NCBI RefSeq assembly: GCF_011386835.1
Contig: NC_088806.1
Coordinates: 29,078,001-29,142,000 of the forward strand
DNA: 64,000 nucleotides
Direction of reading: 5' to 3'
Source: Chrysemys picta bellii
Lineage: Eukaryota
A model generated the notes under the pieces. That model did no database searches. It saw only the letters and a program-made list of their open reading frames with translations, and had not been told where the DNA came from. The position numbers and the translations under genes are program-made. The first letter of the stretch is position 1. Each line of letters begins with the position of its first letter. This document shows, one piece after another, positions 4,424 through 7,400 of the stretch.

Positions 4424-7400
4424 ATGGACCAGAGCCGCATTAAGAAAGAAGCTTTGGAGAAACTTTTTGATCCCAAAGAGTTTTTGAAAGCTTATTATTC
4501 CTTTGACTCCACAAGCAGTGAAAAAAATGATATTTTGATGTTTCTTCTGAGAAACTTCTTTAAGACCTTCATTTTGGGTGAGTCGGGTGTGTTTTGTGCC
4601 ATTCTGTTTGCACAAAGGCTGTTTTATAGTGGGATGTGTGTTGCTGGAAACATGAGTGTGTAGATCTGGATTTCTTTTAGCAGAGGAGATTTTCCCTAAT
4701 TATCTTCTACCCCTGCTTTATGGCGTGATGGGCCACAGCTGGTCATCCTCATTACAAAAGCCTGGCACAATAGGTGCGTTGAGAGTAGTATTGTCCTCTA
4801 GTGTGTGCAATGACAACACTGGGCTGTGCTAATGACCTAGATGGGTCTCCCAAAATCTAGCATGTGCACCTGGATTGTGACAGCATGGAAGAGGGGAGAG
4901 GAGAAAGAGAGAGAGGTGAAGAGCATGCATCAGTGCTTGTGCTCAGGGTCCTGTAGGGTGCAGTGGTTGGGGACATCACTGGTGACAGCGGTTATGGCAC
5001 AGACCAGGACAGAGCAAATCCTCCTTTACTAGTCTGTGCCTTAAGTACAGTCCTCCTGCAAGATTGTTCAGCTCCTCATCCCGTGCAGTAGAGCTCTGTG
5101 CCATTCCCCAGCAAGACCTGGTCCCAGCATTGCGATGACGAACGGCTGGTGGTAGATCAGAAGTCGATACGTCCCACTGAGCCAGGAGTCGCCAGCCAAG
5201 GAGCTCCCCAGCTGCCCTTGAAAGAGGGACTTTCTCCCCAGCTGTTCGTGTGCTTGGCTTGTGGGCCTGGAGAATGTACTTTTAAAGCTACCTGGGCTGT
5301 GTGGGTATTGCTAACTGCAAGCCAAGTGAGCTTAAGTAACAGATGTTAAAAACAACACATCTTGGGTTTTGTTTCGGTGCCTTCTGGATCTTGAGCTTTT
5401 CGGGTTGTTATTTTTTTAAGCTTTCTCCACAACTCTTCACACTAGAAACTAGCTTTAATTGAATTCATTTATTCAAAGGGAAGATGAGATGAGATCTCCC
5501 GGTGCCAGCTTTAAGAAAGATATGGACAAATTGGAGAGGGCCCAGGGGAGAGCAACAAAAAAAGAGAGAAGGCTTAAAAATCTGACTTCCAGGCAGGATT
5601 GGCAGAATTCAATATTAATTTTTTTTATACGTTCACTGGATAAGATCAATGTTTATTTTTAAGCGTCTTTATTTTAATTGATTTAAATTTTCACACTTGT
5701 GGGAAATTGTATGACACTCGGGTGGGGAGGAAGTCAGACAACAATTATTTAATGACAGTAGACACTAAGATTTAAAAAGTTAAAGTTTTATAACCTTTAA
5801 AACACCAATTGTCAATATCACATGCCAAATATTTTACAGCTAAACATCCTTAAATCCAAGTCAAATAAGTTCTGGAGCAGGATTTCTCTTACTTTGGCTA
5901 GCTGTATATTTCAGTTATTATCAATGGAAATGCTTTTTAGTCAGTTTGTGTGTGTGTGGTGAAATCAACGTTAATTGACGTTTACCGATACAAATCTAAT
6001 CCTTTTCAACCTGCTTATAAGGCAACCTCATCATACCGTACCCTCCATAAACTTATCAAGCTCAGTCTTGAAGCCAGTCAGGGGTCCTTCGCTGCATTTT
6101 ACCTCTCCTGGAACTGGCCTTCTTAAAACCCTTTATAAACCCAGAGGGGAAATTGTCCAGCTTGTACCCTTAGCCCCCCAAACCTCCTCCTCTCCCATCC
6201 TCTGCTGCTGTATGTGCTGATACACAGGTATTTTGCATTCCAAACCAGATGGCGTTAAAGGCAACACCTTGATTCGAATTGGCGGTATGCCCAGCATTCT
6301 CGAACTCCTCTCTGCCTGTGAGTCCTTCACGGAGATCATCGTCACACAGAACACGGATCGGAACTGCCAGGAACTGCAGAAATGGCTAAAGAAAGAGCCG
6401 GGAGCGTTTAACTGGACTCCACTGGTGAAATACGCGTGTGAGCTGGAAGGGGACAGGTACGGGGAGGAGACCTAGTTCTGTTACAATTCACCTAAAGAAA
6501 ATATGTAAAAATCCCTTTTAATTTGTGGATCTTCCTTCTCTGGGGTGCTTTTTTCCTAATAATTGTTATGTATTATGGTGGTGTTCAATACGTATAAAAA
6601 GAAAGAAGTGGATTGGATAGAAGTAAAGAGAAAAATTTAACTCCTGGAACCAGGACTCCCCTCCAGCTACCGCTAGCAAGGGATTCCTCTGAATTCAGCA
6701 GACTCAGAGTTTGAACTTGCAATGCTTACAAGAGGAAGGTTTACTCCTACAAGGGTAATTCCCTCCGCCCCTCAACCGGCAGAGTGGTGAACACTTCAGG
6801 ATTAGACCCCCCTTCACTCCCATTTTAGCCTTCGAAATGGGCCATAAGCACTAGATGTTCCAAACAGCTGAGCACACGGGGGGCTGAGCTCCGTAGATTA
6901 TTGACCACACTTTATATAATCTTCCATTTATATGAGTGGGCTATAAAGGGTGAATAAATGGTGAGTACATGTTTTAATAACGGGTTAGTCTATTGCTCAA
7001 AAGTGTTACAGGGCCCAACAGATCAATAACGATTTACACCATTTTCTACAGATTTGCTGATAACCAAACATTTACGACGCATAGTATTTGTGTCTGTAAG
7101 ATACCTGTGTCATTTATTAACCCTTATAAAACTATTATAAATGGGAGCTTCATATAAAGTGTGACCATCTCTGGCTAAATGGGAGCTGAGCTCTTCTGAA
7201 AATCTGGCCTTAAGCAGGTGAATTGCACCCAACAGAGATTTCATGTGACTATGTAACTCTCATCCACTGAGCCGATTGCAGATATATTGACTGTGTGCAC
7301 TGGTCCTGGATATGAAGGGCTCTTTGGCACAACAGTAGCACATTTCTCTTCAGTGTTATATTTATCTTTCCAGGAACAAGTGGGCTGAGAAGGAAGAGAA

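Follow-up and report, generated by a model that had tools for sequence, protein, structure and literature searches.

Type A genes of a turtle NNMT-like cluster: an intact, amplified methyltransferase-fold family with a degenerate cofactor site

The window analysed here, a stretch of 64,000 nt of Chrysemys picta bellii (NC_088806.1, 29,078,001-29,142,000, forward strand), contains five genes of one kind (type A, A1 to A5) and three of another (type B, B1 to B3), all belonging to the NNMT/PNMT/TEMT family and all with three exons. Type A genes are intact, correctly spliced and transcribed, and they are not decaying. But how does a gene family kept in this state come to encode a methyltransferase fold in which both acidic anchors for S-adenosylmethionine (SAM) are gone? 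The reading we favour, with modest confidence and judging from the sequences, is that type A is an NNMT-fold protein whose SAM binding is impaired or changed and which has been retained for a diversifying ligand-binding role. Put more broadly, type A is probably a binding protein or an altered enzyme and not a standard methyltransferase. By the operational definition of a pseudoenzyme (cofactor and catalytic residues lost, yet selected and expressed), its sequences would place it among the pseudoenzymes.

Gene copies were located by tblastn with exon 2, and then with exons 1 and 3, against the window. Exon 2 matches of type A start at 6251, 24251 (reverse strand), 37139, 50055 and 63254, and in A1 frame 3 of 6249-6456 gives the exon 2 peptide with LIRIGGMPS and VTQNTDRN, preceded by AG and followed by GT. 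The splice junctions of the type A and type B models are all canonical GT/AG, and the spliced open frames of A1 to A4 encode 265, 265, 265 and 264 amino acids. Exon 3 of A5 begins 381 bases beyond the window end and is intact, so that the initial annotation, a first description made from the letters of this DNA, was right in giving all five copies intact exons and open frames. The products of A1, A2, A4 and A5 are identical to Chrysemys picta bellii proteins named 'nicotinamide N-methyltransferase-like' by NCBI; a few type A models in the databases are shorter than full length. Are these genes alive? Between the Chrysemys paralogues, introns diverge by 4-8.6%, with 2-12 indel events in each kb, and the length of almost every such indel is not divisible by three; over their 798 bases the coding sequences have zero frameshifts and one in-frame codon deletion. 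Frameshifts and stops are absent from the six complete Chrysemys copies and from the type A genes reconstructed in Emys, Mauremys and Gopherus. A 422-nt contig with a depth of 60, from a transcriptome-sized run under the same organism label, has 6456 directly followed by 7374, the intervening stretch having GT..AG ends. Across the whole assembly, the search found type A exon 3 copies only inside one cluster of about 100 kb; the genome thus holds no type A retrocopy, and the contig represents spliced RNA. The contig carries V65, K79, H85 and C159 and so fits another type A paralogue and not A1 itself. Exon 1 of A1 is barely covered by contigs, which cannot rank the copies. Transcriptome-sized runs of several studies, under several organism labels, contain type A exon words, their status as RNA being an automatic guess. 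Taken together, the open frames despite intron indels, the spliced contig and the 128 of 264 positions that are invariant over three turtle families (25 type A proteins) tell us that the genes are alive. The earlier claim of a real, amplified and intact family, as opposed to a set of pseudogenes, therefore stands on open frames, transcription and constraint on the scaffold.

Type A matches Pfam PF01234 with 277-290 bits against a gathering cutoff of 25 (E 8.6e-84), covering profile positions 5-261 of 261. Its identity to solved NNMT chains is 52-55% in an alignment free of gaps, and hence type A residue numbers are those of human NNMT. An AlphaFold2 model of A1 has a predicted local distance difference test (pLDDT) score of 90.3 and superposes on human NNMT structures with a template modelling (TM) score of 0.95 and a root mean square deviation of 1.2-1.5 Å. 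By sequence and predicted structure, the class I (seven-β-strand) methyltransferase fold and the PF01234 membership of type A are not in doubt.

In class I methyltransferases motif I consists of an acidic residue followed by GxGxG, and a post-I acid at the end of strand β2 binds the ribose hydroxyls. The S-adenosylhomocysteine (SAH) site of human INMT is lined by Asp85, Gly63, Tyr20, Tyr25, Tyr69, Asp142 and Val143 (PMC11987180), a list cited here in place of a direct literature statement on NNMT D85 and the ribose, of which no usable one was found. Residues were counted in 25 distinct type A proteins from eight species (Chrysemys, Trachemys, Malaclemys, Emys, two Mauremys and two Gopherus) and in a comparison set of 111 further members of the family, drawn from mammals, birds, reptiles and amphibians. 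The comparison set has D61 in 109, G65 in 110 and D85 in 109 of its members. In type A position 61 is never acidic (R in 19, H in three, Y in three) and neither is position 85 (N in 18, H in four, Q in three); a partial model from Chelonoidis (P0021) has R61 and N85 too. Within the glycine motif G63 is present in all 25 proteins, while position 65 is A, V, G, M, Q or E, with glycine in just six. Further around the cavity there is F, L, C or Y at position 69, H, Y or N at 86, C, N or S at 163, H, Y or Q at 164, and I, T, N or S at 169. Position 167, whose glutamate is essential for INMT activity (PMC10844679), reads G, E, V, A, D or K, most of the copies having G, V or A there. The adenine contacts are kept, with V143 in all 25 proteins and D142 in 24; P66 is almost invariant too. 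The nicotinamide pocket is not: D197, S201 and S213 of NNMT are replaced by T (21 of 25), C (24) and C (25), and Y204 by F (17). A role of D197 in this pocket is reportedly described in the 2011 NNMT structure paper. S201, S213 and Y204 also have nicotinamide-pocket roles in NNMT, Y204 by stacking on nicotinamide (PMC8436214).

For the five copies of the window, the residue-level description given in the initial annotation agrees with the gap-free numbering. Motif I is degenerate in every one, with R or H at position 61 (LIRIGGVPS in A5), against LIDIGSGPT in all three type B copies. From A1 to A5, position 85 is Q, N, N, Q and H and position 69 is L, F, F, L and L; each visible exon 3 has C at position 163, four of the five copies have F at position 20, and G63, Y25, N90 and D142-V143 are kept. 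The departures it had pointed out in type B, H69 and F25, are likewise there. Set against the 111 other members, the type A residues are no product of chance.

Two features of individual sites deserve separate mention. A Mauremys mutica type A copy (L002 10001-13389) has Y61 together with A142, so that the adenine-contact aspartate is gone too; by its sequence, this would be the most eroded cofactor site among the otherwise intact type A genes seen. The pocket is also rich in cysteines (C163 in 17 of the 25 proteins, C165 in 14, C201 in 24 and C213 in 25), often together with H164 and H203, and C165, C201 and C213 are common to type B. A metal- or metalloid-binding role for such a pocket is conceivable.

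How does selection act on these genes? With a single ratio fitted, dN/dS (nonsynonymous over synonymous rate, ω) comes to 0.89 in type A (nine coding sequences) and 0.53 in type B (six). Under the GY94 codon site models M0, M1a and M2a the log-likelihoods for type A are -2472.3, -2424.0 and -2397.9 (ω of M0 0.88), and M0 is rejected against M1a with twice the log-likelihood difference (2ΔlnL) at 97. M2a places 77% of codons at ω 0.19 and 23% at 3.9; 39 codons have P(ω>1) above 0.9, and these include 10 of the 19 pocket positions defined from the literature (Fisher p 5.7e-5). The mean dN/dS of type A is high because a fast-evolving pocket sits on a constrained scaffold. Tree-free counts give supporting evidence: in 50 pocket-segment codons the mean dN is 0.212 against a dS of 0.129, and dN exceeds the whole-gene dS in 36 of 36 pairs, while the remaining 215 codons have a dN of 0.036 against a dS of 0.101 (ω near 0.35). 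The same M1a/M2a comparison in type B, used as a control, found no positive selection (non-significant). In exon 2, which encodes motif I and post-I, about half of the codons have ω 0 and about half are near 1, which fits relaxed constraint. The scaffold is under purifying selection, the cofactor half of the cavity looks released from constraint and the substrate half looks positively diversified. Of the pair of findings that the initial annotation had named as contrary to its reading, a dN/dS of about 1 is approached, and frameshifted orthologs are not seen, the frames of Emys, Mauremys and Gopherus being open.

In a protein tree type A forms a single clade with 100% support, whose stem measures 0.40 substitutions per site. 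It was recovered, by database searches and cluster look-ups, from Emydidae (Chrysemys, Trachemys, Malaclemys, Emys), Geoemydidae (Mauremys mutica and M. reevesii) and Testudinidae (two Gopherus species and Chelonoidis) only, i.e. from Testudinoidea. The best matches outside type A, in Chelydra, Pelodiscus, Carettochelys and Pelusios, are only 54-59% identical. Orthologous type A pairs are maintained between Chrysemys and Emys. Type B has a counterpart in Pelodiscus with 100% support, and the tree places no type A counterpart there. Where does type A come from? The gene tree groups it with mammalian NNMT and lepidosaur genes at 35% support only; type B, the canonical turtle gene and true NNMT are all candidate sources.

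These observations can be joined in one explanation. Type A is a subfamily of the NNMT/INMT/PNMT fold that is amplified in tandem and seen in Testudinoidea only. Its cavity has lost both acidic SAM anchors (D61 to R, H or Y and D85 to N, Q or H) and mostly the last glycine of motif I, and the acid at 167 is not conserved. Between paralogues as well as between orthologues this cavity changes as fast as neutral sequence or faster, with the scaffold held by purifying selection. Most probably, fold and pocket persist, but standard SAM binding and efficient methyl transfer would be gone. The remodelled pocket would instead bind small molecules, and divergence of the paralogues in their ligands would lead to their retention.

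Is type A perhaps still an enzyme of the usual kind? The idea that type A proteins remain SAM-dependent small-molecule methyltransferases has some probability, though appreciably less than impaired or changed SAM binding. SAM would be held through G63, D142-V143, N90, the N, Q or H at position 85 and R61, which could pair with the SAM carboxylate, and the substrate pocket would be diversifying as in families of xenobiotic-metabolising enzymes. Given the near-invariance of G63, P66, D142 and V143, the proteins may still accept adenosine-type ligands, weakly bound SAM or SAH among them. Hydrogen bonds to the ribose hydroxyls can still be made by N, Q or H at position 85, and about a quarter of diverse family representatives, several amphibian INMT-like and NNMT-like proteins among them, have no acid there, so the NNMT family may tolerate this loss. 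The Gopherus copies retain a near-canonical IGAGPT motif, and methylation of thioethers and selenoethers requires no deprotonation of the substrate. The D61R replacement, too, may say little about the cofactor. It is always accompanied by K140E, which occurs in no other lineage; strands 1 and 4 adjoin in the class I methyltransferase fold, and the two changes may therefore be a structural charge swap. A general coupling of R61 and E140 was considered and dropped, as no covariation of positions 61 and 140 was found across the wider family, and the charge-swap idea draws on type A alone and on the topology of the fold.

The selection results have to be read with similar care. Exon trees disagree, from which it follows that gene conversion has occurred among type A paralogues, and gene conversion can inflate tests for positive selection. 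The whole-gene M1a/M2a test (2ΔlnL = 52) is not relied on; it is partly inflated by mosaic histories, and exons 1 and 2 are non-significant alone. With exon-specific trees the M1a/M2a comparison is significant for exon 3 (2ΔlnL 24.8) and not for exon 1 (3.1) or exon 2 (1.8), and positive selection on motif I is consequently not claimed. The strongest signal comes from the substrate-pocket segments of exon 3 (162-169, 202-206 and 242-244) and not from motif I, as a diversifying enzyme would have it. The 50 pocket-segment codons were drawn after the site-model output had been seen, which is why their rates are given a supporting place only.

What, then, speaks against an ordinary enzyme? The cofactor-contact positions 64, 65, 69, 86, 163 and 169 differ among the paralogues of the type A clade, and one Mauremys copy has A142. 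A SAM-dependent enzyme should fix its contacts, and this variability disfavours SAM dependence. The acid at 167 that INMT needs is, moreover, replaced in most copies.

A second alternative is that type A binds some other adenosine-containing or anionic cofactor or ligand, as a catalyst or as a sensor. The adenine site with D142-V143 and G63 is kept, and the site for methionine and ribose would have been remodelled so as to become more positive overall: in each member the cofactor site loses two negative charges and gains one positive. However, the sequence suggests no candidate ligand, the variability among paralogues at 64-69 and 85-87 speaks against any single conserved cofactor, and K140E may neutralise R61. 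We regard this alternative as unlikely.

Finally, the view that type A copies are young functionless duplicates on their way to becoming pseudogenes, their frames open by chance and gene conversion, finds some agreement in the mean dN/dS, the discordant exon trees and the partial copies and remnants of the array, but it is very improbable and largely refuted by frames that stay open in four genera despite the intron indels, by the invariance of half of the positions across three families and the rejection of M0, and by spliced type A transcripts next to true pseudo-exons of the same cluster that carry stops.

If SAM binding is indeed impaired or changed, what could the proteins do? In its strongest form, and we would give this little credence, type A would be wholly non-enzymatic, a set of fast-diversifying cytosolic small-molecule binders built on the NNMT fold and tied to a biology found in testudinoids only. 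Holocrine mental glands arose once, in the testudinoid ancestor (PMC8129087). Carriage of chemosignals in these glands is a speculative candidate role, suggested by the shared taxonomic distribution. As another candidate role, the cysteine-rich pocket (C163, C165, C201, C213) might sequester xenobiotics or metalloids.

Comparison with characterised relatives helps to place type A. NNMT (2IIP, 3ROD, 2I62), besides its overall similarity in sequence and structure, shares with type A the residues G63, N90, D142-V143 and C165, and about half of the type A copies have an NNMT-like Y242; unlike NNMT, all type A copies lack D61 and D85 and most lack G65. INMT (2A14) belongs to the same Pfam family (E 2.5e-73), and some type A isoforms are named INMT-like by NCBI. 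However, no type A copy retains Asp85 or Leu163 of the INMT SAH pocket, nearly all show replacement or variation at Tyr69, Phe86 and Ala169 and at Leu164 of the substrate pocket, and Glu167 is unconserved. Type B lies in one tandem array with type A, has the same exon structure and is about 55-58% identical to it, yet it keeps a canonical motif I, D85 and E167 and has an ω of 0.53.

Methyltransferase folds without activity are known elsewhere. METTL14 is a catalytically dead methyltransferase-fold protein. DNMT3L is said to be without catalytic activity (PMC11514484). The analogy with type A is functional only: the fold is kept, cofactor residues are lost and selection retains the protein. DNMT3L and METTL14 are, by contrast, slow-evolving, single-copy partners of nucleic-acid methyltransferases, whereas type A comes from a family of monomeric small-molecule methyltransferases, forms tandem copies, has a fast pocket and gives no indication of a partner. 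The NNMT family also has amphibian paralogues (Mantella aurantiaca P0136 and P0234, Ambystoma mexicanum P0141 and P0171) which miss G63, G65, D61 or D85 in various combinations. Some of them resemble type A in having K, Q or H at position 61 and the GG pair, but they are less than 40% identical to it and form independent lineages, and most of those with a non-acidic position 61 keep the acid at 85. Loss of the canonical SAM site may be a recurrent event in the NNMT family.

Paralogues without catalytic activity are familiar among kinases, proteases and nucleic-acid methyltransferases. In the literature we found no paper linking pseudoenzymes with NNMT, none on the turtle NNMT-like expansion or its degenerate cofactor site, and no report of a catalytically dead paralogue in the NNMT/INMT/PNMT small-molecule family. 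The existence of the type A genes is known, as they are already annotated as NNMT-like; it is the degenerate site for which no published mention was found. Type A offers a natural experiment in which a fold stripped of its anchors, with a pocket evolving faster than neutral on a constrained scaffold, adjoins intact sister genes. If the proteins are non-catalytic binders, they would mark a route from a detoxifying enzyme to a family of binding proteins in a vertebrate and would flag similar, unstudied amphibian expansions. If instead they still methylate, SAM binding without the post-I acid would be possible in this family, which is relevant to the annotation of methyltransferases. Whichever of the two holds, the automatic label 'nicotinamide N-methyltransferase-like' probably misleads as to what type A is.

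Table 1. Exons and genes of types A and B in the window (positions are those of the window).
Feature	Position	Strand	Remarks
A1 exon 1	4424..4577	+	ATG to donor, phase 1; spliced product identical to P0001, NCBI NNMT-like
A1 exon 2	6249..6456	+	motif I LIRIGGMPS, post-I VTQNTDRN
A1 exon 3 and stop codon	7374..7809	+	ECDVT (D142-V143), C163-H164-C165, E167, T197
A2 exon 1, inverted copy	25964..26117	-	product identical to P0003
A2 exon 2	24046..24253	-	tblastn
A2 exon 3	22717..23152	-	tblastn
A3 exon 1	34424..34577	+	tblastn
A3 exon 2	37137..37344	+	tblastn
A3 exon 3	38315..38750	+	tblastn
A4 exon 1	48172..48325	+	product identical to P0006
A4 exon 2	50053..50260	+	tblastn
A4 exon 3	51181..51613	+	single in-frame codon deletion within the 163-167 pocket segment
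A5 exon 1	61371..61524	+	product identical to P0009
A5 exon 2	63252..63459	+	exon 3 outside the window, L005 381-816
B1	9725..12518	+	exons 9725-9869, 11350-11557, 12086-12518; canonical LIDIGSGPT and D85
B2	40663..43455	+	exons 40663-40807, 42292-42499, 43023-43455
B3	53537..56334	+	exons 53537-53681, 55166-55373, 55902-56334; exon 1 also joined to A5 exon 2 in P0307
Additional intact type A exon 3 with acceptor	17662..18097	-	within 99.7% identical duplication of A2 3' end
Type A exon 3 remnant, truncated	27481..27651	+	last 56 codons and stop; adjoins exon 1 of inverted A2

The whole cluster runs in the order B, partial B, A1, B1, orphan exon 3, inverted A2, remnant, A3, B2, A4, B3, A5, A6, a stop-riddled pseudo-exon and a canonical family gene. 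The segments 16446-18330 and 21501-23385 form a duplication of at least 1.9 kb, which puts a second exon 3 at a distance of 5 kb downstream of A2. The orphan copy differs from A2 exon 3 by two residues (TT to NG at 197-198). It could serve as an alternative last exon, or else reflect a very recent duplication or an artefact of assembly. The truncated remnant on the other side of A2 is probably a scar of the inversion that turned this gene around. A sixth type A gene, A6, lies about 4.9-12 kb past the window end (L005 4904-5057, L006 408-2021; G000:C16). It differs from A3 by one nucleotide in 798, which suggests a very recent duplication inside the array. A remnant of a family exon 2, interrupted by two in-frame stops, occupies the same relative position in the Chrysemys and Mauremys clusters (L006 9824-9952; L002 17370-17435 and 33708-33861); it is a true pseudogene common to both, in contrast to intact type A.

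Within intron 1 of A1, the stretches 6041-6078 and 5477-5578 draw many high-depth contigs from all runs; they resemble pieces of interspersed repeats more than exons. An apparent extra exon at 5477-5578 was dropped, as it resembles interspersed-repeat sequence. Type B exon 1 can also be joined in frame to type A exon 2: NCBI isoform X1 of A5 (P0307) combines B3 exon 1 with A5 exons 2-3, and Mauremys reevesii has a chimeric isoform of the same kind (P0285). A transcript contig with a loose end before 6246 ends with B exon 1 sequence exactly at the acceptor of A exon 2. Such a chimera gives Y20 back to the type A body.

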